64,000 bases of DNA, taken from Paragordius varius (taxonomy: Eukaryota > Animalia > Nematomorpha). The stretch spans positions 1,488,001-1,552,000 of the forward strand of contig OZ176056.1 of the NCBI GenBank assembly GCA_964247055.1, in the 5' to 3' direction. The notes under the pieces were generated by a model that was not told where the DNA came from, searched no databases, and worked only from the letters and a program-made list of their open reading frames with translations. Both the position numbers and the translations under genes were made by a program. This document shows, piece by piece, positions 6,401-46,252 of the stretch (its first letter is position 1; each line of letters begins with the position of its first letter).

Positions 6401-9400
6401 GCCTTATTCTAATGATAAAAATTTGAAATTTTACATATTTATTACGGTTAAAATTAATATAATGTGTTTTTTTAAAAGACAACCAAACTTAAATCTTGAT
6501 TCTTTTCAATATAACTCATTGTTTAGAATGGCAAAGTGTTAAATAAATATATACAAACACAATCATTTCTACATATTTTATAATTTTTACTAATAGCTTA
6601 TATAAGAAAAATTGAGGTTTTAAGAAGAAAGTATGGTTATAATTTTTAAATAAAAATATATGCCTTTATATTTTTACGTTTTGTCCGTATAATTTAAATT
6701 TTTAATGCATTTTAAATATTTCCATGTTAACTTAAATTACATCAAAATTAATTTTAATCAAACACAGACATATAAATATAGCAATTTAAATAATTATGGC
6801 TATGAATGTGATCCCATATAATAAAATTAAAATTTTTTACATTCTTTATTCAAATATTTTAATTTAAAACAAAAAGAATTTGAAAAACAAAACAGCTGAC
6901 TAAGTTTTCTTTAAAATTTTATTTTTAATCCATAAATATACTACCGTTCTTTCCCCCCGTAACTTTCAACACTTCGAATTATTCGATTTACACGTTGAAT
7001 CAAGATTTGATCTTTTGGTGGATTTGAAACATGATTTTCAGTGTTAAAGTATTGACAACCATCGAGGTTACACATGTAATTGAGCTAAAAAAATAAAAAA
7101 ACGAAAATAAAAAAAGTTAAATATTGGAAAAATTAAAATTAAATATATATATACATCATTTACAATTCATATTCACCCTACAACACTTTAAATTCACCCT
7201 AAAACACTTCAAATTCACCCTCGAACAATCCAAATTTTCCTTAAACAATTCGAATTCACCCTCGAATAATTTAAAATAACCCTTGAACAATTCGAATTTA
7301 CCCTCGAACAATTTAAAATCACCCTTGAATAATTCAAATTTGCCATTAAAATTCACCCTCGAACAATTTTTATTCACCCTCGAATAATTTAAATTCACCC
7401 TTAAACAATTCAAATTCACACCCTAAAATAAATCATGTGCTTTATAGCTCAAATATTCCCCACACTTTTTTATATTTTAAAAAAATGAAATTTTGCTTAA
7501 AATTAAAATATACTGAAATAATTAACTATGTCATAAAGATATATTTTATATAGATATGGTAATGAGTTAGTTATATTAGCCTGAAAACACATAATTTATT
7601 ATTAGGGTGAATTTAAATTGTTCAAGGGTTAATTTAAATTGTCAATGGTATATATATTCAAAAAACCACTGTACTTTCTTTTTTGAAGATAACTCAATGT
7701 TTTAAATTGCAAATTATGAAATAAAGATGTATAATAGTAACAAAGCATTTTACAATTAAAATTTAACAATTAATATGGGAAAAATTAAAAAAATAATTGT
7801 TTTTTTAAAAAAGAAATATACTGTATAATTTATAGAATTTTTACCTAACCCCCCCCCCCTCTTTCAAAATTACACATATAAGTTAAATAATTTAAATAAT
7901 AAACAATTACGCAATAATTACATAATGACTAACATATAGAATATATAATTGTTGGGCTATAAAAATTAAAAAAAATACGGTATTTTAAATTTAAGACAAC
8001 TCCAATTAAATGTTAAAAATCTTTACAAGTTTGTGTTCAAAATGTCCAACTAAGATTCGGGGATTTTCCTTAAACACTTTAATAAAATGTTGAAAAATTA
8101 TCTATTTCAATAAATTTTTGGCAACTATTTTTATTTCAAATGTAATCTAAACACGTACTAAAATTTTGTAGTAAGACATGTATTAATTTTAGTGGTGATA
8201 TATTTAAAAGTTTAAGGGCAAAAATAAAATATGTTTAATAAAAGAGCTGTTTGAATCTTAAAAGCAGCCGTTAAAATATTAAAAAAAACTATTGGCAATA
8301 AAAAAATTTTAATTAAAAATATGCAAAATTTAATTAAATATTCAGCTTAGCAGATTTTTATTCATATAATTTAAAAATATTAAAACGAAATTAACAATCA
8401 CCTTTGATTTGATTTAAGTTTAATTACACCATATACCTTACATTTTTTAGATATATGAATGGATTTTAAAACAATCATACTAGTTTTAATTTTATATAGC
8501 CGTTCAAAAAAGTAAACCCTTCGATATTTTTATTAGGGTAACTTTTGATATTTAATGTAAATTTAAATATATGTATTTTTTAAAACTACATTTTTTTATC
8601 AAAAAAATACACTAAAAAGTTAAATTATAATGCGGACAAAAGGTAAATAAAGAAATAATTTTTTCAAAAGACACCTGTATTTTTTTTTTGTTTTCTTATT
8701 CAATATAACCTATTTAATTAAAATTTTATTATCGATAATTGATTGTGATTTTTTCCAATAACATCCTTAATCCATACTTTAAAATTTAAAACAATGAGTT
8801 ATATTTAAAAAAATGGTTTATACAACGGTCTTTAGATTAAAGATTTTTGTCTTTATATTTTTTTATATTATAAAATATTTTCAATTTTTACAGTGATTAA
8901 AAAGCAAAAAAAAGTTAATATAAATAATTCCAATTTTTTTTGTATTTAAGGCACATATATATTTTAACATATTTTCAATAAAAATAATTCCAAATTTTAT
9001 AATAAAATCTTTTCAATTTCTTATTACCTTTCCAGTATGTAGATCCAAATTATAAGTGGATATATATTCACCCCCGACCAAGAATACATCATCACCAAAT
9101 TTCAAACTGCTTTTCAACAGGTTTGACGTTGAAAATGGGAGAGCGCTTATAACTTCATTTCGGACTTCGTAATGGTCAGTGGAATCACCATGGCAACCGT
9201 TGCCATGGCAACGCATATTTTGGTTTTCATCATTATTATCACTAGGAATAATTTTAGCCTGTTCATATTGATAGAGGCGACCATCTAGGGATGGTATAAC
9301 ACGTACACGAATACCATTACGTACAGCCTGTAATTAGTAAAATGTATAAAATTTAATATTTTAAAAAATTATAAAAATAATTTTTTGTGATTGATAATTA

Positions 9401-11375: not shown

Positions 11376-13213
11376 AGAATGATAGGAAAACCATACAATT
11401 GAGCAATTTTAGGTAACTCCCTTTGAGTCAAGCAGGTGATCCGACGTATTTAAAAGTTAACCATAAAAATGTACATCAACCTGAAATTTTTCAAGATAAA
11501 ATTATATAAATAGTATGGTTAGGATTAAATTTATTTTTTGCAAAACCAAATTAAAAAAATTTTACTATAGATAATTTTTAAATCTTTAGAAATTTCAAAT
11601 TTAAATGATACTATCGGAATAAATTGTTTTAACATAAGATATTCTCAAATGTATTAGGGTTCTCATGGTACTTTTAAATTAGTACAATAGTCTGATTTAA
11701 AAAAGTCTATTTATGCTTTTTAGTTAATTGCTAATATTATAAAAGCGCAAAATTTTTGCATATCCAAAAGATTTTTTCGGTGAAATAAAAAAGCTTCATC
11801 CCGAAATCACCGATATAACATATACCACTTATAAAGAGCAAACGATTAATCTTTTATTTAAATTTTAGATGTAGGCTCCGAAAGTCCCAAAATTTCTAAC
11901 ATCTTTTAAATGGCTAGTTCTTTTACAATCAAAAATGCCGGCGCGTGAAAAAATTTTAAATAAAAAAATTTTTGACATCAATTATAAATATTTTTAAAAA
12001 ATGTATACTTTCAAAAATTTATTTTTTACCAAAATGCGAATATTATTTTAAGGGATGATGGAAAAGGTAGAAAAACGCTTGAAGATATTAAAAAACATTT
12101 ATACTGCCTCCATAATCAAGGGGTATAAAAAATAACCTATTTTTTAGGAAAATGTATCAGGATTATCATGGTGCTTTGGTTTTGAACTATACAAGTGTTA
12201 TATAAGAATACACTTTCGTGGTAAGTATATCAAATAATGGCAAAATTTGCGTTAATTTTTAAAAATAATTTTTTTTGTGAAATAGCGGCTTCAGTTCAAA
12301 AATATTAGTAAATATATTATAAATGATATAAGAAAACAAGGTTCGTTTGCTTTTTATTTTTTAAATTTTTGTTAAAAACACAATATTAATTCAATTAATT
12401 AGGAGACGAAGGAATATATTAATTAAAATTCGGATGTAACAGAAATGTTCAGCATTATCGAATTAAAAGTTTTTTTATAATATCTAAAAGCGTTTTTACC
12501 CGTTTCCATTCTGACTCAAGATATTATGAATATGCCTCAACAAAATTTTGATAAAAATTAAGTTTTTGAAATATGCATTATTTAGATTTTTATCGCGCAA
12601 TCTCGAAATTTTTGTGTTTAGCTTAAGATGCCCATTTTAAACGGGTTCAAAAATTTGGGAATTTTGGAGCTCACATCTAAATTTTATAATTTTTTAAATG
12701 TATTACTTTGCTATTTTAATATAGTTTATGATATATTTTAGTAAATTTTTTTAAATGAGCATTTAGCTTTTACCATTATTATTCAACAAAATTTGCGACC
12801 ATTTTCTGATTAGCTTACACTAAATGGCGACTTTCTTATATAACTCGTACGACCATCATCAAAAGTCCTGAAACTTTTTTATCATAATATATATATATTT
12901 CAAATATTGCGGAAACTGTGTAGATACAACATTTTAAAATTTGAAAGATATCTGAATTGGATATTACAGTGAGTTTTTTTAGGTAAAAATTATGAGTTTC
13001 AGGCTGCTTTAAAAGATTTCTAAAAATTTTATGTAAGAAAGGAGTATAATAACTAGATTAAATTAATTTGTCGTTCCAAATTTTGGTAACAGAGTAAATT
13101 AAAACTTTATATATTATCAGTTATGAATCATAACCCTATTTTAGTGCATGTTGTTATATTCAATTTATTAATTCTCGTTTGATATATTATTTACTGCAAG
13201 TTCAGTAGCTGCT

Positions 13214-13225
13214 AATATGGCCGCC
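13214..13225. promoter_or_regulatory. YY1-like motif (AATATGGCCGCC) in the divergent intergenic region between PERK and the coiled-coil gene
   Basis: Resembles the AANATGGCGGC/AANATGGCCGCC YY1 consensus and is a GC-rich island in an AT-rich background. This is a motif match only. Confidence 0.2.
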
Positions 13226-13408
13226 TAGAATAGAGTTAGGCACTTCTACTTTAGATTGATTAATACAATACAGTAAAAATTACAATTTCGCAGACAAAAT
13301 GTAATATCTTGACAATTAACTTTTAATACCGCTATATACATTTTATACCTTTAGAAAAAACTATTAAATTACAAATTAAATTATACAACTGAGTTTATAA
13401 ATATATTA

Positions 13409-18891: not shown

Positions 18892-19021
18892 TCAGGATTT
18901 CGCCGCGTTTTCAAAGATTTTGCTGATAAGAAGGGAGAAATTAATAGCACAAAAGATTCCCAGAATTAAAAACAGGCATGCCATCATAGCTGCCAATGAG
19001 GCTTGATTCGAAGGAACTAAA
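18892..19021 (-). CDS. Duplicated alternative terminal exon (TM11) of the ENT gene
   Basis: Acceptor ttttattccag, the same phase as exon 22127-21995, encoding (N)LVPSNQASLAAMMACLFLILGIFCAINFSLLISKIFENAAKS*. Confidence 0.85.
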
Positions 19022-20049
19022 CTGGAATAAAAAAAATTTTTTTTGAAAAACATATATATATAAGATCACCCTTGAACATTTATTATTTCAAAATTACCTT
19101 AAACATTTTACAAATCATTCTTTGGGCTAATAATTTAACTTAATGTTTTGATATTGAAATTTATTAACATTTTTGGATTTTTAAAAACACATAATTTATT
19201 TTGAGGCTAAGTTTCAAATGTTCGAGGGTGAATATGTAAAGTGTAAATGGTATGCATAAAAAAATTAAATTTCCTAAAATTTTATATAAAATAGGGATTA
19301 TTGGCATTTTCCGAGGAAAGTTTAAAAAAATATTATCGAAAAAAATAAAGTTATGATTTACAGAGGATGTTTATAATTAAGCAATTTTCTTATCAGAACA
19401 ATTATAGATAGCGAAAAGAGTTAGACTTTTAATACAAGCACCGAACGTTTTTAATTTATATGGTTTTATATAAATAAATGTTGAATGACACTAGGAGTGA
19501 TTGATAGTTAAAAATATATATAAAATTAGATTTTAGAAATTACCTTCCGAAGATAAATTATTTATAATTAAAAAAAATAATTTTTTCATCATATTAGGAC
19601 AAATAAAAATTTGCACACATTATGTTAGTTGAGCCCTAAAAATGGGCTTAATTCAATATTTTCAATCAATTTATAAAATATATTCAAACTAAAGGGTAAC
19701 TTAATAGTAAGCTTTATGAAGATAATATATATCAAAAATCATCCAGAACAGATAGTGTTTATAAAATAAATGCAAAAAAGCCGCAATTATACGATGAAAT
19801 TAATCATTAAATATATTAGTAGTAAACAGTTAAATAAAAGGTAATTATGATATTACATCATATTACAAACCATATATTAGTTAAAAGCTTTTTTTCGATT
19901 GCTGGTTATATATTAAGTTGATTGCTAATTTTTCAATCATAACTAGATATCGATATCTTTAATGGTGGCGAATTCCATAAATGTATAAAAATATTTGAAA
20001 GTGTATTATCAAAAACGATTGATAAAATTTGGTTTATAAATATATGTCT

Positions 20050-21994: not shown

Positions 21995-22910
21995 TTAATG
22001 TGCCGCATGCAGTGAAGAAAATATTTTTGAGATTAGAAGGGAGAAATTTATGCCAAAAAAGATTCCTAAAATAAGGAAAAGGGCAGCCATCATTCCAGCT
22101 AGGGGCGCTTGGTTAGGGGGCACTAATCTAAGATATAGTAGGGTACAATACAGAAAAAAGTATCAATAAAGTTAATTTTTGTGGTGCTAAAAAATGTGTT
22201 AGTTATATATTTTTTGGATTAAACCTGAATTGTTCAAATCATAAAATGGATAAATTGCATTAATTTTACTATCAGAATATAAATGTTCATCTGTAAACTT
22301 TCTAAAGCCATATATTATATAAAACACAAGTATATGTAACCCGTTTGATTAAATTTTTTTTACACGTTAATCAACATTCTAAACTAGAGGGCCTTAAAAA
22401 ACATAACCATAAAAAACTCATATTCTCCGAATCTATTGTCTTTAGTAAAAAACTGAGCATATATAACCTTTTAGAACACTATACATTCTTAAAACCTTTG
22501 AAAACATTTTTTTTTAAAAATAGTCAAAAAAAAGTTAAATAAACTTACTTGGGGGCATACATCATAGTGAGTGAACTAAAATATCCACTGGTGACCGACA
22601 TAAAAATACCCAACAAAGCATAAATCCAATCACTCTTTATATAAACTGGGAACCGTCTTATATCAGGTCTGTAATTACAGCACAGGAATATGGGAATTAG
22701 TAAGGCACGAGCTACAATAGGCACCCAAACCCATTTAGGACCAGGCTTAAAAAATTGAGTTTCAGAAAAAAAACGTAAATTTCAAAAACATAAAAATATA
22801 TATAATAATTTAAAAATAAACCATTTCCACTTCAAATTCACCCTTGAACAATTTAAATTCCCCCTATGAAATAAATTAAAGGTTTTTTTTAAGATTAAAA
22901 ATTACCTGTA

Positions 22911-22949
<39 letters not shown>

Positions 22950-24117
22950 TTAAAAAAAATTGTTTAGAACTTAAATTATATTAATAAATATACTAAGCCA
23001 TAAAGATATTCATATTAATAATAAGTTATATAAGTTCGAAAACACATAATTTATTTTTAGGGTGAATCGAATTGTTCAAGGGGTGAATTTAAATTGTAAA
23101 TGGTATTTTTAATATAATTTTAAAAAAAGGTAATAAAAAATTATATTTTAAGATAACATATGTGAAAGAATAAAATAAACGTCCTTTATACCAATACGCA
23201 TATTCAAAATTCTAAAACATAAAAAGTTTGGCAAAAACCATATGATGCCCAATATATATGTATATATATATATATATATATTTATAATATATATATGCAG
23301 ATATATATAATATAAAAAGTTAAAAAAATTAATAACTAAATTCAGGGCCATAAAAAGGTACTTTTAGGACCGTGGTTTAAAAACCACTAAATTCCATTTT
23401 ACAAATAACAAGGCTACATATTATTTATATACATAACATCTCTCTTTACAATATAGAAATTAAAATATAAAGACAAATAATTGTTTAACCATATTTTTTA
23501 ACCTTGAATATTTCCTATATTTAATTATCATTGATTGTGTTACCATTTACATTTTTATCGCATACTTTGCAATTAAATCAATGAATATTTAAATAAAACA
23601 TGTTTATAAAAGTATGCTTTTCTTTTGAAAAAACAATAATTGTCGTTATATTTTACGTTTTTTATGTACAATTTCAGTTATTACTGTAATAAGGCGCTGT
23701 ATATTTGAAAAAAAGCCCATTTCTAAAGGTGAAGGGGGGGGGGGGGAAGGGAGCAAATTTTACGATCCTTGATTTTAAATCAATTCGTCCTAACATGTAG
23801 TATATTTCGTTTTTTTACTTAAATTATATGGTAAATTCAAAAAATAGCAAAAATATCCTATGTACATTCTACTATGGCACTGTGTGATATTCCATTTTAA
23901 TTAAAAATCAATCATCAATATAGTATTGATGTTAATAAAATATCACCTACCTTTGTTTTATATTATGAAACATAATTGTAAAGCATATAAACAATAGTCA
24001 TCACCCTTTTCCCTAATAAAGGGTACGGAATTAAAAATTATATTAATATGCGTGTAGTACCAAAAATACAGAATAAATTATGTATTTCAAGTTAAACGAC
24101 CCCCCCTTATATATATA

Positions 24118-24152
<35 letters not shown>

Positions 24153-26616
24153 AAACAAAACTTAATTTATGCAAAAAAGACTGACACATTAAAATAACCC
24201 ATTTGGAAATAGAGACATTTCTATTTTTATCTTTGTCAAATGTGCTCTTAGAAATAATATTTCTAAGAAAAATTATATGAAATTTAGATTTTGAATAGCT
24301 CATAAAATTAAATATAAACAAATTACCTTACGAACATATTCGGATATCATATTCCCAATTAAGGCAAACAGATTGAAGTTAAGGAAAGTGATGATGGGTT
24401 GATAATATTTTTCTAAAAAATAAAATTTAAACTATTAAAGCTTAAAAACTAATATATTTAAAAGGACAATTTTTGTATTTATATTATTTTAAACCATTTG
24501 TTTTGGGGCTTCAAAAAAGGAAATAGAGATGTAGATTGGCAAAACACTTAATTACATATTTTTACAAATAAATTATTTAGATATAGATGAAGAAATAAAA
24601 AAATTTTCTCACATAAAAAGATATTTTTTGTATGCATTTACATTTTAATTTATATCAAAACTCAATATAATATAGAAACCAAAATGATTTATAATTCTTA
24701 AAATTCAATGAAAAATTAATCCTAAAAAATACCTGATATAAAAAAGTTAGGATCACTCCTATGTATGTTTGCTTGTATGGCAGGAAATATGGTTAAGGTT
24801 ACGAAAAAGCTAAAAAATACTCCAAAACATTGAACCCAAATCTATTAATATAATATGAATAAATTTGAATTTTATTCAAAAGGCTATTAATTTGAAATTT
24901 GCATAAAAACAACCATTTAAATTAATGACCTTGAGAGTTTGCTTGTGATTAATATATAATTAATGACAAAAATATAATATTTTGACCTATCAAAAATATT
25001 TATATGGTCTTAATCGAGTTTTAAATGGCCTGGTATTATTTTATTGGCACAAATCCAATAATTTATGGTAGACTAATTATCATGCAATAAAAATAGATTA
25101 TCATCTATTAATACATCACATTTCTTTATAGCCTAAGGCCAAATGTTATATATAAACACACATGGATTGTGTTTAATAATGAGCTTATAAAAATAGACTA
25201 TAGCACATTTTTTCTCACGATATAATTACGAGAAATAAAATGGTAAAAAATGCGTAATATATTTTCAAAATTTCCTAATTTCTAAGAACGGTCGGTCGGT
25301 ATATCCAATTTTTAAAATAATCAAAGAGGAAATGGAGTCATATTATATAAAAAAATTTGTATAAATTATATTGAATTTACCTTTTTAAAAACTGAAATAT
25401 AATCGTCTCGCGAGTATTTGGCACGTTTTGTAGTTTTGAGTGTGGCATCAACACCTTGTTCTAATAATTCTTTAGCCAAAGGTTCAGTCTTCAAATGGTG
25501 TCGATAAAATCGCTAGAATATTTATATAAAAATTGCAAATATGGAAAAAAAATTTCCTTGAATAAAAATGGCCATAACCAAAAGCAATCGTAAAAATTTA
25601 AAAAACATAGAGACAAAACATAAAATGTGACACTTAATATTAGTTTAAAAACCAACCCTAATTTACCCAATTTAACCCATGTTGTATTTGGATTTAAAAT
25701 AAAAGAAGTATATTGATCAAACACACAATTTAATATTTCGCATTTTGTAATCTCCTAAATATATTGGTTTAAAATTTGGACGTAAAAAATGATATTTCTT
25801 TTTAAAAAAAGTTACCGTTAAAGGCAAAGCAAAATACGAATCAAAGCAGACGAGTAAGATAAGTTGTGCAGCTATGAAATACCATATGGCAGCGAGTCGT
25901 GGGTTTGGCGAAACAGCAATTACAAGAATATTAACGAGAGCCACAATAGTTCCACACAAATTATTTCCAATAACGACGGCATTTGTGTAACTCATGGGTA
26001 AACTCCCAACTAAACCATAGATTGAATTTTGATACAATCCAGTGGCACTGTTCATAACAACAACCGTAATCATGGTGAGAACAAAAAATATTTTGGGCCA
26101 TCCTGAAGTGTTAGCAATGGCTAAAATAACGGTAAAAATGCACATAAAAACATTGATAAGGATTGATATAGGTATCCGCGGGTGTGTTTGATAATTCAAA
26201 TTGCTATCTTTATTCCGTGAATCGCCAAATTGAATGAATAAGTTTACGGCATTTAAGATGACATTGGGGATTTGCGACGCAATACCCAAATAATTCAAAA
26301 AATTGTCTCGGTACTCAGTGGTACCAGTAACATTTGGGCTTAGTTTGAAATCAACAAAATACTATCTAATTAAAAAATAAAAATATACTGAATTCGCATT
26401 GATAAATACATTCCATGGAATAAGAATCCCAATACCATGTATAATCATTATAATATACACCAAATTAAACCTAGCCAATTTTACAAATTTTTACTTATCA
26501 CGCGGTGCATAGTCCGTACTAAACTGCCCTTTTTCACTGTCGATCTCTAATTTTGAGTTATCTTGATTGTCAGAGTATTGGGAGTTATCTACAAGAGATT
26601 CATTGTGTTTTTCCAT
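21995..26616 (-). CDS. Equilibrative nucleoside transporter (SLC29/ENT family), 468 aa, 11 TM
   Basis: Exons 26616-26495, 26470-26389, 26361-25816, 25512-25381, 24841-24733, 24412-24327, 22745-22549, 22127-21995 (1407 nt, in frame). Family motifs: PRDKFNLVYII..HGIGILIPWNVFINA, YFVDFKL, GLYQNSIYGL, YTNAVVIGNNLCG, FFVTLTIFPA, FNLFALIG, TSGYFSSLTMMYAPK, AGMMAALFLILG. Confidence 0.95.
26362..26388 (-). other. 27-nt intron (GTATATTTTTATTTTTTAATTAGATAG)
   Basis: It contains an in-frame TAG; removing it joins ...INANS to YFVDFKL as in ENT homologues. Confidence 0.85.
26471..26494 (-). other. 24-nt intron (GTAAAAATTTGTAAAATTGGCTAG)
   Basis: Retention gives an in-frame TAA; removing it joins APRD-K-FNLVY, the conserved pre-TM1 motif. 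Confidence 0.85.
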
Positions 26617-32233: not shown

Positions 32234-35200
32234 TACCATTTTTCATGCAAAAACATCATTTTTTCAACCAAATGCAACATTTTTTCAACCAAACACAACA
32301 TTTTTTCAACCAAACACAACATTTTTTCGAGCAAACGCAACATTTTTTCAAGCAAACGCAACATATTTTCAAGTAAACGCAACATTTTTTCAACCAAAGA
32401 CAACATTTTTTCAAGCAAAAACAACATTTTTTCAACCAACGACAACATTTTTTCAAGCAAAAACAACAATTTTTTTAAAATAAAAAACCATTTATTTATT
32501 TTATGACATATTAAATTTAAAGTTAATGTAAATTAATTTTAGCGTAGAATTATGATTTTTATTGTTTTATCATAAATATTTGATGGTACATTTTAATTTA
32601 GCCCATAAATTGCATTATTTATTTATATTAATTATTATTTTCTTTTACAATTTAAGTTTCTCCTAATCAATCTATACTGCGCTTCAAGATTGTTCTTTTA
32701 CATTTAAACTTAGTCCTATAACACTTCAAGTTGAACCTTCAATATTTAATTTTTATTCTAACGTTTATTTATGAGGCAATAAAATATTCATTATTTAATC
32801 ATTTAAACCTATTTTTTTATTAACCTAAACCTTTAAGTGAATACATTTCTTTCATAAGAACTGTAAATCCTTATTGTATAAATTAATATTAAAAAATATC
32901 TATGCTTTGTGGGTTATTGATGGTAATATTTAGTTTAAAACAATAATAAATTTATAATATTGATAAATTTAATAAAATTTTCAAACAAAGTTGTTTTACT
33001 ATAATAATATTAATTTTGATTCAAAAACTAATAAATAGAGATATTAGTTTAAATTTAAAAAATAGATAATTACACACAAAAATAACGGTTGTATGGAAAC
33101 TGCTAAAATGTAAGGAATTTTAAGCGAAGGATAACTTTAAATTTTTAAAGAGAGTCTTAAAGTGCAAATTGTATTGATTGATAAAAAAAATATTTATAAA
33201 TAAATAATGCAATTTATGGGCTAAATAAAAATGTAAATCAATCATACCATCAAATATTGATGATAAAACAATAAAAATCATAATTCTAGTTAATTTACAT
33301 TAACTTTAAATTTATGTCTTAAAATAAAAAAAATGGTTTTTTATTTTAAAAAAAATTGTTGCATTTGCTTGAAAAAATGTTGTCGTTGGTTGAAAAAATG
33401 TTGCCTTTGGTTGAAAAAATGTTGCGTTTGCTCAAAAAAATGTTGCCTTTGCTTGAAAAAATGTTGCGTTTGCTTGAAAAAATGTTGAGTTTGGTTGAAA
33501 AAATGTTGCATTTGGTTGAAAAAATGATGTTTTTGCATGAAAAATGGTATACATATATATATATATATATATATTTTTATCAATCAATACAATTTGCGCT
33601 TTAAGACTCTCTTTAAAAATTTAAAGTTATCCTTCACTTAAGATTCCTTACATTTTTTGCAGTTTCCATACAACCCTTATTTTTGTATATAATAATCTAA
33701 TTGTTTAAATTTAAAATAATATCTCTATTGATTAGTTTTTGAATCATAATTAATATTTTTATAGTAAAACAACTTTATTTGTTTCGAGGTAATTTTCTTT
33801 AATATATTAATATTATAAATTTATTATTGTTTTAAACTAAATATTACGATCAATAACACACAAATAGATATTTAATATAGTTAATTAATAGAAAATAATA
33901 AGGATAACGGTTCTTATAAAATTAAAGATTTAAGTTATAAAAAAAAATAGGTTTAAAATGATTGAATAATGAATATTTTATTGCTTCATTAATAAACGTT
34001 AAATCAAAATTAAAATTTTGAAGGACCAAATTAAAGTGTTCTAGGACCAACTTTAAATTTACAAGAACAATCTTGAAGCGCAGTATAGATTGATTAGGTG
34101 AAACTTAAGTTGTAAAAGAAAAAAAATAATTAATATAAATAAATAATGCAATTTATGGGCTGAATTATAATGTTTAAAAATCAATTATACCTCAAATATT
34201 TATGATATAACAATAAAAATCATAATTCTAGGCTAAAATTAATTTACATTAACATCAAATTAATATGTCGTAAAATAAAAAAAAGGTGTTTTATTTTAAA
34301 AAATTGTTGTCTTTGCTTGAAAAAATGTTGTCTTTGGTTGAAAAAATGTTGCATTTGGATGAAAAAATGTTGTCTTTGGTTGAAAAAATGTTGCGTTTGC
34401 TTGAAAATATGTTGCGTTTGCTCGAAAAACTGTTGTCTTTGCTTGAAAAAATGTTGCGTTTGGTTAAAAAAATGTTGCATTTGGATGAAAAAATGTTGTC
34501 TTTGGTTGAAAAAATGTTGCGTTTGCTTGAAAATATGTTGCGTTTGCTCGAAAAACTGTTGTCTTTGCTTGAAAAAATGTTGCGTTTGGTTAAAAAAATG
34601 TTGCATTTGGATGAAAAAATGTTGTCTTTGGTTAAAAAAATGTGCGTTTGCTTGAAAATATGTTGCGTTTGCTCGAAAAACTGTTGTCTTTGCTTGAAAA
34701 AATGTTGCGTTTGGTTAAAAAAATGTTGCATTTGGATGAAAAAATGTTGTCTTTGGTTGAAAAAATGTTGCGTTTGCTTGAAAATATGTTGCGTTTGCTC
34801 GAAAAACTGTTGTCTTTGCTTGAAAAAATGTTGCGTTTGGTTAAAAAAATGTTGCATTTGGATGAAAAAATGTTGTCTTTGGTTGAAAAAATGTTGCGTT
34901 TGCTTGAAAATATGTTGCGTTTGCTCGAAAAACTGTTGTCTTTGCTTGAAAAAATGTTGCGTTTGGTTAAAAAAATGTTGCATTTGGTTGAAAAAATGAT
35001 GTTTTTGTATTTTTCAACCAAACGCGCCATTTTTTCAAGCAAACGCAACATTTTTTCAAGCAAAGGCAACATTTTTTCAAGCAAAGACAACATTTTTTCA
35101 ACCAAATACAACATTTTTTCATCCAAACGCAACATTTTTTCAAGCAAAGACAACATTTTTTCAAGCAAAAACAACACTTTTTTAATATTACAAAGAATTA

Positions 35201-36406
35201 CTATTTATTGTATGACAATTTAATTATAAATTATTTATTTAATTTTAAGTTAATGTAATTTATTTTTAGCGTTGAATTGATTTTTATCGTTTTATCATCA
35301 TTTGATGGTAAATTAATGGATTTTCAAACATTTTGATTTTGCCCAATTGCCTTATTTATTTATATTAATTATATTTTTCTTTTACAACTTTAGTTTCGCC
35401 TATAATGATTTTATATAATTTGCACTTCAAGAGTTTTTTTGAAAGTTTAAAGTTGTCTTTCACTTCAAGTTGCTTTTACTTTTTTATTTTGTTTTTAACT
35501 TTTATCAATTAAATCGAAAATGATTTATCTGTTTTATTGTTTTTAACCTATTTTCTATTATTTAACATAAATTTTAAATCGATATCAACTTTTAATCTTT
35601 GAGAAACCGCATATTAATTTCTTAAAATAATTTTAGATTATAAGATTTTATTACGAAATGAAAAAATATATGAGTTTTCTGGGTTATTAATTGAAATTTT
35701 TCATAAAAAACATTAAAAGTTTATAATTTTGTTCAATTAAAAAAATATTCTGAAACAAAAATGTTTTTCAATAATTTTTTTATTTTTAAATGGATAAATA
35801 TATGATAAATAAAGAAAATTAGGTTAATAAATAATAAAAAAAAATAAATGCAAAAATTAGGGTAAAACAAAATTTAAAATTTTAAGGACCAACTAGAAGT
35901 GTTCAAGGACAACTTTAAATTTTCAAAGACACTCTTGAAGTGCAAATTATATAAAATGATTATGGTGAAACTAAAGTTGTAAAAGAAAAATATAATTAAT
36001 ATAAATAAATAAGTTAATTGGGCAAAATCAAAATGTTTAAAAATCAATTAATTTACCATCAAATATTGATGATAAAACGATAAAAATCATAATTCAACGC
36101 TAAAAATAAATACATTAACTTAAAATTAAATAAATAATTTATAATTAAATTGTCATACAATAAATAGTAATTCTTTGTAATATTAAAAAAAGTGTTGTTT
36201 TTGCTTGAAAAAATGTTGTCTTTGCTTGAAAAAATGTTGCGTTTGGATGAAAAAATAGGGTATTTGCTTGAAAAAATGTTCCGTTTGCTTGAAAAAATGT
36301 TGCGTTTGCTTGAAAAAATGTTGCCTTTGCTTGAAGAAATGTTGCGTTTGCTTGAAAAAATGGTGCGTTTGGTTGAAAAAATGATGTTTTTGCATGAAAA
36401 ATGGTA
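32234..36406. mobile_element. Nested foldback complex with TACCATTT/AAATGGTA termini and 21-bp (AAAAAATGTTGCGTTTGCTTG-type) arrays
   Basis: Arrays at 32234-32470 (-), 33350-33549 (+), 34295-35008 (+), 35009-35175 (-) and 36195-36406 (+). 32234-32640 is inverted against 33190-33549, 32470-33185 against 33575-34290, and 35170-35420 against 35930-36190. The termini abut (TA)n tracts. Confidence 0.8.
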
Positions 36407-36769
36407 TATATCTTCCAACTTTTATCGCCATTTTAATTTTTAGAGTGGGTCTTTACCCTGGTTAGTTTGATAAAAGAACTGAATTAAATTTATTGTTTCA
36501 TGAGTAAAATGCAAAGTTGATTGAATGATTTATTTTTAGAAAATTAGTTTTATTGAAAGGGAGCTTACGAGGAGAGCGGATTAAAATAGGGGCTAATTCA
36601 ATGGCTAGACCAGCGCTTTCATATATCGTTTATATGATTTAAACTAAAATAGGGGTCCTCCTATTACAGTTGACTGAAACTATATAGGCAAATAAAAATA
36701 TAAAGACACATATTTTTTTCAAAAGACAACCATTTAACCTTAATTTATATATTTATAAAAATAGAAAAT

Positions 36770-39640
36770 GCTGGCTTTGTGATCTGGTAGCGGAAAACCG
36801 ATAGGATCATTCAAACCCAAATATCGAAAAAATATAATCATTAATGAATGCCCCGACAATAGCTTCGCCCTTTTTTGAAATAGGCCCCCAGTTCGGGCCC
36901 ACCCCGTGTGAAAAATAAAAATGGTGTCTTTGAGACAATTTTACGGAGAACGTGTTGGACCATTATTTCAAATATCATTTTTGTTTGGTTATTTTCGATT
37001 GCGCCGAACACAGTCGTCTCGCTTTTTTAATTTAGGCCCTCTTATATCCGCTCTCCACCGTAAAATGCCATTTTTTTAAAAAAACAAAGTCAACAAAAAA
37101 TTTTTTTTGAATCTATTTTTCGCCAAAGGTATGAGACCGTAAAAATTCAATGCGGATTCTACGTATTCCCTGTTTAAAGACAAAAATTTTAATCAAGCAT
37201 TTCTTTAATGATAGCTGCTGGGTAAAGAGCTACCCGTTATAAACTGATCCGTCATGTGGCTTTGTGATCTGGTACCAGAAACCCGGTAGACCCATTCAAA
37301 TCCAAATATCGTAAAAATATGATCATTAATGAATGCCCCGACAATAGCTTGGCCCTTTTTTTAAACAGCCCCCAGTTAGGGCCCATCCCGTGTGAAAAAT
37401 GGTATTGTTTTGAAAACAGAATCCCTACAAAATCGTGTCTTTGATACAATTTTCCGGAGAACGTGTTGGACCATTCAATTTCAAATATCATTTTCATTTG
37501 GTTATTTTCGATTGCGCCGAACATAGTCGTCTCGCTTTTTTGATTTATTGCCTCTTTTAACCCACTTCCCCCATAAAATGCCATTTTTTTCAAAAAACAA
37601 TGTCCACTAAAATATTTTTTGAATCTATTTTTCGCCAAAGGTATGAGACCGTAAAAATTCAATGCGGATTCTACGTATTCCCTGTTAAAAGGCAAAAATT
37701 TGAGTCAAATATTTTGATGTTTGCTGCTAGGTAAGGAGCTACCCGTTAAAAACTGATCCGTAATGTGGCTTTTTCATCTGGTACCGAAAAATCGGTAGAC
37801 CCATTTGAATCCAAATATCGAAGAAATATAATCATTAATGAAAGCCCTGACAATAGCTTCGCCCTTTTTTTGAAATAGACCCCCAGTTCGGGCCCATCCC
37901 GTGTGATTTTTTTTTTGAAAACAAATCCCCACAAAAATCCTGTCTTTGAGACAATTTTCCGGAGATGTTGGACTATTCAATTTTAAATATGATTTTTGTT
38001 TAGTGATTTTCGATTGGGCCGAACATAGTCGTCTCTCTTTTTTGATTTAGGGCCTCTTTTTACTCGCTCCCCCCGTAAAATGTCATTTTTTTCAAAAAAC
38101 AATGTCCACTAAAATATTTTTTGAATCTATTTTTCGCCAAAGGTATGAGACCGTAAAAATTCAATGCGGATTCTACGTATTCCCTGTTAAAAGGCAAAAA
38201 TTTGAGTCAAATATTTTGATGATAGCTGCTAGGTAAGGAGCTACCCGTTAAAAACTGATCCATAATATGGCTTTGTTATCTGGCACCGGAAAACCGGTAG
38301 ACCCATTCAATTCCAAATATCGAAGAAATATACTCATTAATGGCCCCGCGTCCTATTTTTGAAATAGGCCCCCAGTTCGGGCCCATCCCGTGTGAAAAAT
38401 GGTATTTTTTTGAAAACAGAATCCTTATAAAAATCCTGTCTTTGAGACAATTTTCCGGAGAATGTGTGTGACCATTCAATTTTAAATATGATTTTTGTTT
38501 AGTTATTTTCTATTGCGCCGAACATAGTCGTCTCGCCTTTTTGATTTAGTGCCTCTTTTTACCCGCTCCCCCCGTAAAATGCCATTTTTTTCAAAAAACA
38601 AAGTCCACAAAAATAATTTTTTAGATCTATTTTTCCGCAAAGGTATGAGATCGTAAAAATTCAATGAGGATTTATTCCCTGTTAAAAGGCAAAAATATTA
38701 CACAAGCATTTCTTTGATGATAGCTGCTGGGTAAGGAGCGGCGCGTTAACAACTGATCTGTAATGTGGCTTTGAGATCTGGTACCGAAAAATCGGTAGAC
38801 CCATTTGAATCCAAATATCGAAGAAATATAATCATTAATGAATGCCCCGACAATAGCTTGGCCCTTTTTAAATCAGGCCCCCAGTTCGGGCCCATCCCGT
38901 GAAATTTTTTTTTGAAAACAAAATACCCACAAAAATGGTGTCTTTGAGACAATTTTCCGGAGGTGTTGGACTATTCAATTTCAAATATCATTTTTGTTTG
39001 GTTATATTCGATTGCGCCGAACATAGTCGTCTCGCTTTTTTAATTTAGGCCCTCTTTAACCCGCTCCCCCCATAAAATGCCATTTTCTTCAAAAAAACAA
39101 TGTCGACAAAAATAATTTTTTGAATCTATTTTTCGCCAAAGGTATGAGACCGTAAAAATTCAATGCGGATTCTACGTATTTCCTGTTAAAAGGCAAAAAT
39201 TTTGGTCAAACATTTCTTTGATATGATAGCTACTGGGGAAAGAGCCACCCGTTAAAAACTGATCCGTCATGTGGCTTTGTGATCTGATACCGGAAAATCA
39301 GTTGACCCATTCAAATCCAAATATCGAAGAAATATAATCATTAATGGCCCCTCGCCCTTTTTTGAAATAGGCCCTCAGTTCGGGCCACCCCGTGTGAAAA
39401 ATTGTTTTTTTAAAAAAAACAGAATCCCCACAAAAATGGTGTCTTTAAGACAATTTTCCGGAGAACGTGTTGGACCATTCAATTTCAAATATGATTTTTG
39501 TTTAGTTAATTTCGTTTGCGCCAGACATAATCGTGTCTCTTATTTTATTTAGGACCACTTTTTACCCGCTCCCCCCGTAAAATGCCATTTTTTTAAAAAA
39601 AACAGTCTACAAAACTAAATTTTTAAATCTATTTTTCACC
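36770..39640. repeat. ~500-bp relatively GC-rich tandem satellite, about 5.7 units
   Basis: GGTATGAGA[CT]CGTAAAAATTCAATG recurs near 37128, 37640, 38142, 38642 and 39143; CCCCAGTTCGGGCCCA is in each unit. Confidence 0.9.
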
Positions 39641-44447: not shown

Positions 44448-45518
44448 TTAAGTAATATCAATGCTGTATAAAGTTTTTGGAATAAAAATACTATGGTTTT
44501 TTATAAAAATTTTGGTTTGTGGGTGAATCTCTCTTTTCTCTTCTCGCCTATTAAGAAGTTCATGTTCTGAGCTCTGTATGTATAAGGCTTCCTTTGTCAG
44601 TCTAGACTTTAGTTTCTTCTCGATGCCCAAGATATTTATTGTTGTAGAACAACGGTGATCATTGTCTAAGCAATGTAAGAACATGGCTGAATTCTTGCAT
44701 CTTAGGTGTTCTTTGTACCTCAATTTTATGTCGCGTTTTGACTGGCCTATATATTTGGCAGGACAGTCACTACAATTCAATCTGTATATTGTGTTTTCCA
44801 GCTCGACATCGCGAGTTCTCAACATAGTGAGAACGTTCGCAGTAGGTTTGTAGTAAACCTTTAAATTCTTTTTCCTTTTTAAAATTTTGCCTAGACTGGT
44901 AGAAAATCCGCTGTAAGGAAGGCAAACATTGCGAACAATTGGGATACTAGATGATTGCGATTCATTTGTATGACAAGTGATCGGTGTTGCAGTGTGCTCT
45001 GTGTCATTAATAGGATTGATCGATGCTGATGTATTTTTGTTTTTTAGGACTGTGTTAACGGCCGACGTAATCCATTCCTGGTGGTAACCCTGGCGTAGCA
45101 GATATTGTACGACTTCACCTGTCTGTTTTATCTGCATTTCTAATGTGTTTGGTAGAAGGAGTGTACGCTTTATATAGCTAGATACTATGGCTTTGTATGT
45201 GGATGGCGGGTGATTAGATTCTAATGATAGGAAGCTGAAATTAAATAATTTTTATAATGAACTTTGGTGGTTATGGATATCTGGTTGTCATTGCGGATTT
45301 TAGATATGACAATGTCTAAAAAAGGTATTGAGTTGTCGACTTCCTCTTCTTTTGTGAATTTTAATTCCGATTCGTTGTTTAGGGCTATAAATAATTTATT
45401 TTGGTTAATTTCTGAATCTATTATTAAGATGTCATCAACATATCTCTTGTAAATTTTATTTCGTTGTTTGCCAAAACGCTTTTTTCAATGTGTCTGAGGC
45501 ACAACTCACCTATGACTG
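44448..45518 (-). pseudogene. Penelope RT C-terminal remnant plus GIY-YIG endonuclease (frameshifted, 5'-truncated)
   Basis: Reads SVIGELCLRHIEK.. / YKRYVDDILII..LKFTKEEEVDNSIPFLDI.. / SNHPPSTYKAIVSSYIKR..GY..TIYRLNCSDCPAKYIGQSKRDIKLRYKEH..SAMFLH..RLTKEALYI..LLNR. Two frame breaks are visible in the RT part. Confidence 0.88.
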
Positions 45519-46252
45519 AAAGCTATATAAAGCGTACACTCCTTCTACCAAACACATTAGAAATGCAGATAAAACAGACAGGTGAAGTCGTACAATATCT
45601 GCTACGCCAGGGTTACCACCAGGAATGGATTACGTCGGCCGTTAACACAGTCCTAAAAAACAAAAATACATCAGCATCGATCAATCCTATTAATGACACA
45701 GAGCACACTGCAACACCGATCACTTGTCATACAAATGAATCGCAATCATCTAGTATCCCAATTGTTCGCAATGTTTGCCTTCCTTACAGCGGATTTTCTA
45801 CCAGTCTAGGCAAAATTTTAAAAAGGAAAAAGAATTTAAAGGTTTACTACAAACCTACTGCGAACGTTCTCACTATGTTGAGAACTCGCGATGTCGAGCT
45901 GGAAAACACAATATACAGATTGAATTGTAGTGACTGTCCTGCCAAATATATAGGCCAGTCAAAACGCGACATAAAATTGAGGTACAAAGAACACCTAAGA
46001 TGCAAGAATTCAGCCATGTTCTTACATTGCTTAGACAATGATCACCGTTGTTCTACAACAATAAATATCTTGGGCATCGAGAAGAAACTAAAGTCTAGAC
46101 TGACAAAGGAAGCCTTATACATACAGAGCTCAGAACATGAACTTCTTAATAGGCGAGAAGAGAAAAGAGAGATTCACCCACAAACCAAAATTTTTATAAA
46201 AAACCATAGTATTTTTATTCCAAAAACTTTATACAGCATTGATATTACTTAA
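45519..46252 (+). pseudogene. Inverted duplicate of the Penelope thumb/GIY-YIG region
   Basis: Identical protein to the minus-arm ORF from SYIKRT onward. The N-terminus of supplied ORF 45464..46252 is antisense RT sequence. Confidence 0.85.

Follow-up and report, generated by a model that had tools for sequence, protein, structure and literature searches.

Two putative spliceosomal introns, 24 and 27 nt long, in a nucleoside transporter gene of the horsehair worm Paragordius varius

At its start, the gene of Paragordius varius for an equilibrative nucleoside transporter (ENT) can be read from an ATG at 26616 on the minus strand in a single frame over 172 codons, and this frame contains exactly two stops (translation of 26616-26100; all coordinates without a contig name are those of the window, that is, the whole stretch of 64,000 nt that was analysed). 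Each stop falls within a very short segment bounded by GT and AG. The question raised by this locus is whether these two segments are introns that are spliced out to make the transporter, or whether their presence has to be explained in some other way.

The two segments and the gene that carries them

The first segment (segment A, 26494-26471, minus strand) has 24 nt and the second (segment B, 26388-26362, minus strand) has 27 nt, both lengths being divisible by 3. A TAA stop is found in segment A directly past ..APRDK, and a TAG stop in segment B, nine codons beyond ..FINANS. When both segments are excised, the translation becomes ..PRDK/FNLVYIIMIIHGIGILIPWNVFINANS/YFVDFKL.. (the slashes mark the junctions). 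Considered as introns, segment A would be in phase 2, splitting a Lys codon as AA/G, and segment B in phase 0, at the codon boundary TCA/TAT. A previous sequence-only reading of the window had given the coordinates and the sequences of both segments correctly; the lengths of 3n and the in-frame stop that it described in each of them were observed again, and the junctions that it predicted, PRDK/FNLVY and NANS/YFVDFKL, result once the segments are excised.

To build the gene model, hairworm and brachiopod ENT proteins were used as tblastn queries and the splice sites were read on the sequence; where the gene itself served as query, its exons were taken one at a time. The features of the resulting eight-exon model, all of them on the minus strand, are the following:

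26495..26616, minus strand: exon 1; ATG at 26616-26614, 40 codons plus the AA of the split Lys codon (ends ..GAT AA); colinear with the N-termini of Gordionus ENT proteins (MEK..P[KR]D[RK])
26471..26494, minus strand: micro-intron A; 24 nt, GTAAAA...GCTAG, phase 2
26389..26470, minus strand: exon 2; 82 nt, from G TTT AAT.. to ..AAT TCA; transmembrane helix 1, motif HGIGILIPWN
26362..26388, minus strand: micro-intron B; 27 nt, GTATAT...GATAG, phase 0
25816..26361, minus strand: exon 3; 546 nt, starts TAT TTT GTT.., without interruption where Lingula has five introns; match to PF01733
25513..25815, minus strand: intron 3; 303 nt, GTAACT..TCTAG
25381..25512, minus strand: exon 4; RFYRHHL..VFKK
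24842..25380, minus strand: intron 4; 539 nt
24733..24841, minus strand: exon 5
24413..24732, minus strand: intron 5; 320 nt
24327..24412, minus strand: exon 6
22746..24326, minus strand: intron 6; 1,581 nt, the sole kb-sized intron of the main model
22549..22745, minus strand: exon 7; match to PF01733
22128..22548, minus strand: intron 7; 421 nt
21995..22127, minus strand: last exon; TAA stop at 21997-21995

The eight exons are all open and add up to 1,407 nt, which corresponds to 468 codons plus the TAA stop. The Pfam family Nucleoside_tran (PF01733, SLC29) was recognized in exon 3 (E=1e-23, 84.7 bits) and in exon 7 (E=1.8e-17, 64.1 bits), with a gathering cut-off of 29.8, and a search over the 110.6 Mb of the genome (44 contigs) indicated that ENT is a single-copy gene. 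Since the gene's own stop is a TAA, the genetic code is the standard one. The introns measure, in order, 24, 27, 303, 539, 320, 1,581 and 421 nt. The kb-sized introns mentioned in the sequence-only reading are thus reduced to one (1,581 nt), the other long ones being of 303-539 nt. A GTA donor is present in seven of the seven introns and a TAG acceptor in six of them, with AAG in the remaining one; given these common starts and ends, the tiny and the long introns share their signals. A single intron of 133 nt (26494-26362) that skips exon 2 was also considered and rejected: with 122 nt upstream of it the frame is shifted, and transmembrane helix 1 is deleted.

Some other elements of the window should be described here. 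A second intact copy of the last ENT exon lies at 18892-19053 (minus strand), 3 kb downstream of the first one; it reads ..AAMMACLFLILGIFCAINFSLLISKIF.. and ends with a TGA stop, and tblastn with Lingula ENT3 matches both copies. The window has a GC content of ~24%, in a genome that is repeat-rich, and no further conserved multi-exon gene was found in it, the Pfam search giving just weak GIY-YIG and low-complexity matches. Two divergent ORFs of 229 and 262 aa, at 44448-45137 (minus strand) and 45464-46252 (plus strand), each with a weak GIY-YIG match (E ~1e-3, under the cut-off), may belong to a mobile element. In addition, the region ~34240-37700, with ORFs of 110-240 aa on both strands, a higher GC content (33-35%), a strong skew in GC and a weak Pfam match of low complexity (LbR_Ice_bind), looks like a repeat array rather than a gene.

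Homologous proteins and ancient intron positions

The closest proteins are the annotated ENT paralogues of another horsehair worm, Gordionus sp. m RMFG-2023, two of which present 74% and 69% identity to exon 3, while the next best proteins reach at most 56%. The six Gordionus paralogues are 68-80% identical among themselves, and their models are fragmentary (240-280 aa vs ~470 aa). If the two segments were translated, they would give inserts of 8 and 9 residues, and such inserts are absent from all the homologues examined, namely the six Gordionus models and proteins from arthropods, annelids, a brachiopod and nematodes. When the Gordionus proteins were compared with the window by tblastn, a gap of exactly 9 residues appeared over intron B; the excess of 8 residues at intron A was placed by tblastn in the N-terminal tail, a variable part in which PKDRMNLNY pairs with PRDKFNLVY.

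The genes of more distant animals have introns at these same places. In ENT3 of the brachiopod Lingula anatina, site A (GAC AA/GT..AG/G TTT ATG) is occupied by an intron of 318 nt in phase 2 and site B (GAA TCC/GT..AG/TAC TTC) by one of 263 nt in phase 0. In ENT3 of the scorpion Centruroides vittatus, introns of 18,891 nt at site A (GAC AG/GT..AG/A TTG) and of 3,557 nt at site B (TCA/GT..AG/TAT) have the phases observed here, and the helix-1 exon of both Lingula and the scorpion presents the same boundaries as exon 2 of the hairworm. In the ENT gene of the nematode Steinernema hermaphroditum there is no intron at site A, whereas site B carries one of 41 nt in phase 0 (TCG/GT..AG/TAT). The bilaterian ENT/SLC29 genes therefore agree with the hairworm gene in the intron positions and phases around the helix-1 exon (Lingula and Centruroides at both sites, Steinernema at site B only) and differ from it in the size of the introns, which is 41-18,891 nt in those genes vs 24 and 27 nt here. 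Another difference is that the five introns dividing the next 546 nt in Lingula ENT3 have been lost in the hairworm gene.

With the two segments excised, the frame becomes exactly colinear with all the homologues examined, and both places are ancient intron positions; the segments are therefore not explained by chance. It is not credible that two GT..AG segments landed by accident on those two codons in the right phase.

As an aside, the Lingula ENT3 locus itself (LFEI02000042.1) contains exons 2-5 twice, at 6401-8002 and 11801-13403, 5.4 kb apart and with 100% protein identity, and the later exons are doubled too. This doubling is due either to a duplication in tandem or to the assembly.

DNA contigs, natural variation and the alternative explanations

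In one study (P1), the Logan contigs of two samples (X1 and X2), with a depth of ~340-360, carry both segments unspliced and without joints, and they evidently represent DNA. In a run of another study (X5), low-depth contigs (depth 2-4, ~98-99.6% identity) cover intron B over window positions 26072-26479. In the contigs of X1, X2 and X5 the segments present 0-3 differences. As the X1 and X2 contigs span both segments without joints, the segments exist in the DNA and are no product of the assembly, and in those samples no excision takes place at the DNA level.

The contigs also revealed natural variation. In sample S2 there is a second haplotype with one additional base inside intron A, i.e. 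a 25-nt allele, which would cause a frameshift if it were coding and so is not coding. Furthermore, four single-base variants were observed in exons 1 and 2 (at 26410, 26428, 26512 and 26542), two of them in exon 2, and all four are synonymous third-position changes; with synonymous sites counted over the complete codons in exons 1 and 2, this outcome has P ~0.004 if the changes are random and neutral. Exon 2 lies between two stops and its variants are nevertheless synonymous; it is thus under coding constraint in that frame, and this is sensible only if both segments are removed.

On these grounds we consider it very probable that both segments (24 and 27 nt) are genuine spliceosomal introns, which would be removed to make the transporter. 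This explanation is strongly supported by the colinearity with homologues, by a position and phase common to three other phyla, by the natural variation and by the DNA contigs of two samples. The same evidence upholds the core of the sequence-only reading, according to which obligatory ultra-short GT-AG introns would exist alongside long ones in an animal gene.

Of the other explanations, the one that survives best, although we consider it very improbable, is that the N-terminus of the gene is dead, either because the gene is a pseudogene or because translation starts downstream, so that the stop-bearing segments would be in-frame insertions which are never removed. In its favour, splicing was seen in no RNA: among the sequencing runs listed as containing the stretch none is on record as RNA, and a run with the same species label, which we guess to be RNA (X9), had no contig placed on it. 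The protein collection gave no transcript-derived protein of this species with ENT exon 3, the full-length Gordionus protein P0005 or a 257-aa alpha-tubulin exon as queries. The best identity found with the alpha-tubulin query in that collection, for which a 449-aa product was eligible, was 94%. The gene being single-copy, there is also no paralogue for comparison. Nevertheless, insertions of this kind would have to start exactly at a GT, to end exactly at an AG and to lie, in the right phase, at two ancient intron positions; exon 2, between the stops, retains the most conserved ENT motif and varies only by synonymous changes; all eight exons are open, with a total divisible by 3; and a transporter without transmembrane helix 1 would presumably not be functional.

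Still less probable, in our opinion, is a programmed elimination at the DNA level comparable to that of the internal eliminated sequences of ciliates, in which case the sequenced DNA would be the unprocessed form. The smallest ciliate internal eliminated sequences are similar in size to the 24-27 nt observed here. Against it, the contigs of both samples contain the unexcised form alone, at full depth and without joints; the GTA..TAG ends are those of the long introns of the same gene; and the positions are orthologous to those of ordinary spliceosomal introns in three phyla.

A readthrough or recoding of the stops, or a variant code, would have the segments translated as inserts of 8 and 9 residues, and it could appeal to the fact that both are in frame, with one frame running through everything. 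We give very little credit to this explanation: no homologue examined has the inserts, the gene ends with TAA at the end point of its homologues, and the 25-nt allele would shift the frame. Finally, an assembly or sequencing artefact, with segments that do not exist in the DNA of the organism, has no observation in its favour and is practically discarded by their recovery, with 0-3 differences, in contigs of the two P1 samples and in the low-depth X5 contigs of another study.

A further observation on the public runs is that those labelled as four other organisms (X5-X8) contain 14-22% of the sequence words of the stretch. It seems that samples recorded as other species contain DNA of this worm, or of a very near relative, perhaps because these species are hosts or through carry-over.

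Splicing signals, in-frame stops and short introns elsewhere

As spliceosomal introns, the 24- and 27-nt segments would derive by shrinkage from two ancient introns of bilaterians, situated on either side of the exon of transmembrane helix 1. Both would be U2-type GT-AG introns, and their excision from the pre-mRNA would be a precondition for making the equilibrative nucleoside transporter. We propose that this excision would be carried out by the major spliceosome through intron definition, with minimal signals that may consist of GTA at the 5' end, TAG at the 3' end and a branch adenosine whose position, ~9 nt upstream of the 3' end, is a guess. What is observed in both segments is the GTA start and the TAG end, a restored colinear open frame, and the orthologous position and phase. 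An A at 9 nt from the 3' end is present in four of the four micro-introns read in this genome (see below), which as a common signal is just a lead from four cases; the word TTTAAT occurs in intron B alone, and intron A has no T(T/A)TAAT word.

A U12-type (minor) intron was also considered and rejected, given that the extended 5' consensus /[AG]TATCCTT and the branch box TCCTTAAC are found in neither segment. A search of the genome showed a canonical U2 snRNA with a GUAGUA box, while the search for U12 snRNA, which is of limited power to show absence, gave no match. In the U2 search a first look returned 12,790 candidates; 46 matches were obtained, graded from 178 to ~38 bits and many of them clustered, on contigs C3 (~257-530 kb), C2 (~11.95-11.99 Mb) and C5 (~12.73-12.79 Mb). 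These matches could be a large family of U2 genes and pseudogenes, or a U2-derived repeat.

Another aspect to mention is the meaning of the in-frame stops. The sequence-only reading had linked the 3n lengths and the stops to a retention made visible to nonsense-mediated decay (NMD), as in ciliates. In these organisms the introns are also very short (~25 nt in Paramecium, 15-16 nt in Stentor) and those of 3n length are policed by translation and NMD, an argument built on the genome-wide depletion of stop-less 3n introns (PMC5014332, PMC8997360). The hairworm introns resemble those of ciliates in their length range and in that a retained 3n intron meets a stop. However, ciliates have solely tiny introns whereas the hairworm ENT gene combines tiny and long ones, and the stops derive here from the splice consensus: the TAA of intron A is formed by bases 2-4 of the GTAA donor read in phase 2, and the TAG of intron B is the acceptor itself of a phase-0 intron of 3n length. 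A GTAA donor read in phase 2 yields a stop with certainty, and so does a TAG acceptor read in phase 0; the stops are thus no sign of an NMD-driven design; even with only GT..AG and the local intron composition fixed, a simulation gave a stop with a probability of 55-70%. The 24/25-nt polymorphism of intron A shows in turn that the 3n length is not maintained, and it should be noted that three of the four micro-introns read were found through being in frame. The proposal of an NMD-visible retention is consequently not supported, the stops being by-products of the splice consensus and intron A having a 25-nt allele. The on/off switch suggested in the same reading is speculation, and nothing was found that bears on regulated retention.

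The two micro-introns besides those of ENT were read in other genes. The gene of ribosomal protein RPS13 (C7:4565952-4569116) has a 27-nt phase-0 GTA..TAG segment after ..RSVPT, at ~1554-1580 of the locus, and its first and third introns are of ~129 and ~100 nt. In the alpha-tubulin gene (C3:3256814-3260530, minus strand) a GTA..TAG segment of 29 nt, not a multiple of 3, separates the ATG from the universal RECISIH (M/RECISIH), and further introns follow, one of ~75 nt, in frame, after ..EPTVV and another after ..CCLLYR. In the portion of actin that was read no micro-intron was found. The ultra-short class is defined by lengths <30 nt and reduced GTa..AG signals, and such are the 24- and 27-nt introns of ENT, the 27-nt intron of RPS13 and the 29-nt intron of alpha-tubulin. 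A majority of tiny introns (a median <30 nt in a compact genome) is not what these genes present, as tiny introns account for just two of the seven in ENT, and RPS13 and alpha-tubulin contain others of ~75-130 nt.

Animal introns of this size have been described recently. According to Hadjez et al. 2026, introns <30 bp occur among animals just in the Myxobolidae (Henneguya salminicola, Thelohanellus kitauei and Myxobolus) and in Dicyema japonicum, with medians of 22-27 bp, a reduced 'GTa' donor, a few A residues ahead of the AG and a canonical U2, and more lineages are to be expected (PMC13644364). The background of the sequence-only reading, which had attributed introns of 20-30 nt to ciliates and nucleomorphs, is therefore outdated. 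The introns of myxobolids and Dicyema share several features with those described here: they are GT-AG introns <30 nt with a 5' signal of ~GTA in genomes with a canonical U2 snRNA, the polypyrimidine tract is replaced by a patch rich in A that lies a few bases ahead of the 3' AG, and they are found at positions of introns conserved in other animals. On the other hand, tiny introns are the norm in the compact genomes of those parasites, whereas here they are two of seven, both at the 5' end, and the others have 303-1,581 nt. In addition, the hairworm belongs to an ecdysozoan lineage and its genome, repeat-rich and with 24% GC, is non-compact, unlike those of myxobolids and Dicyema. Literature searches brought up nothing relevant on the introns of hairworms, and the word 'intron' appears neither in the genome paper of Gordionus nor in a comparative preprint on hairworms.

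The ENT micro-introns would extend the known kind of animal ultra-short introns to a new phylum, as judged from the evidence of the genome. What this locus contributes is an intron orthology, exact to the codon, with three other phyla, together with a natural polymorphism in intron length. For this single gene, the outcome is a complete ENT model of 468 codons. As the sequence-only reading had anticipated, ordinary gene finders could miss such introns, and programs for alignment or gene finding whose shortest permitted intron is 20-40 nt will break or truncate the genes that contain them; STAR, by default, takes gaps <21 nt for deletions.

The published animal introns <30 nt being limited to two reduced parasite lineages, a third lineage would be of interest, above all if its genome is repeat-rich and has long introns. 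It is possible, although we put this forward as a tentative and rather doubtful proposal, that horsehair worms represent, independently of the other two, a third lineage of animals with introns <30 nt, one in which miniaturisation is uncoupled from genome compaction, and that the tiny class occurs only within a few hundred bases of the gene start, with downstream introns of 0.3-1.6 kb or longer. A cap-proximal tiny class, if true, would imply a position-dependent splicing by intron definition with a minimal GTA..A..TAG signal, and such a third lineage would demonstrate that introns of 24 nt can be processed by an animal spliceosome of standard appearance even where the genome has undergone no general compaction.
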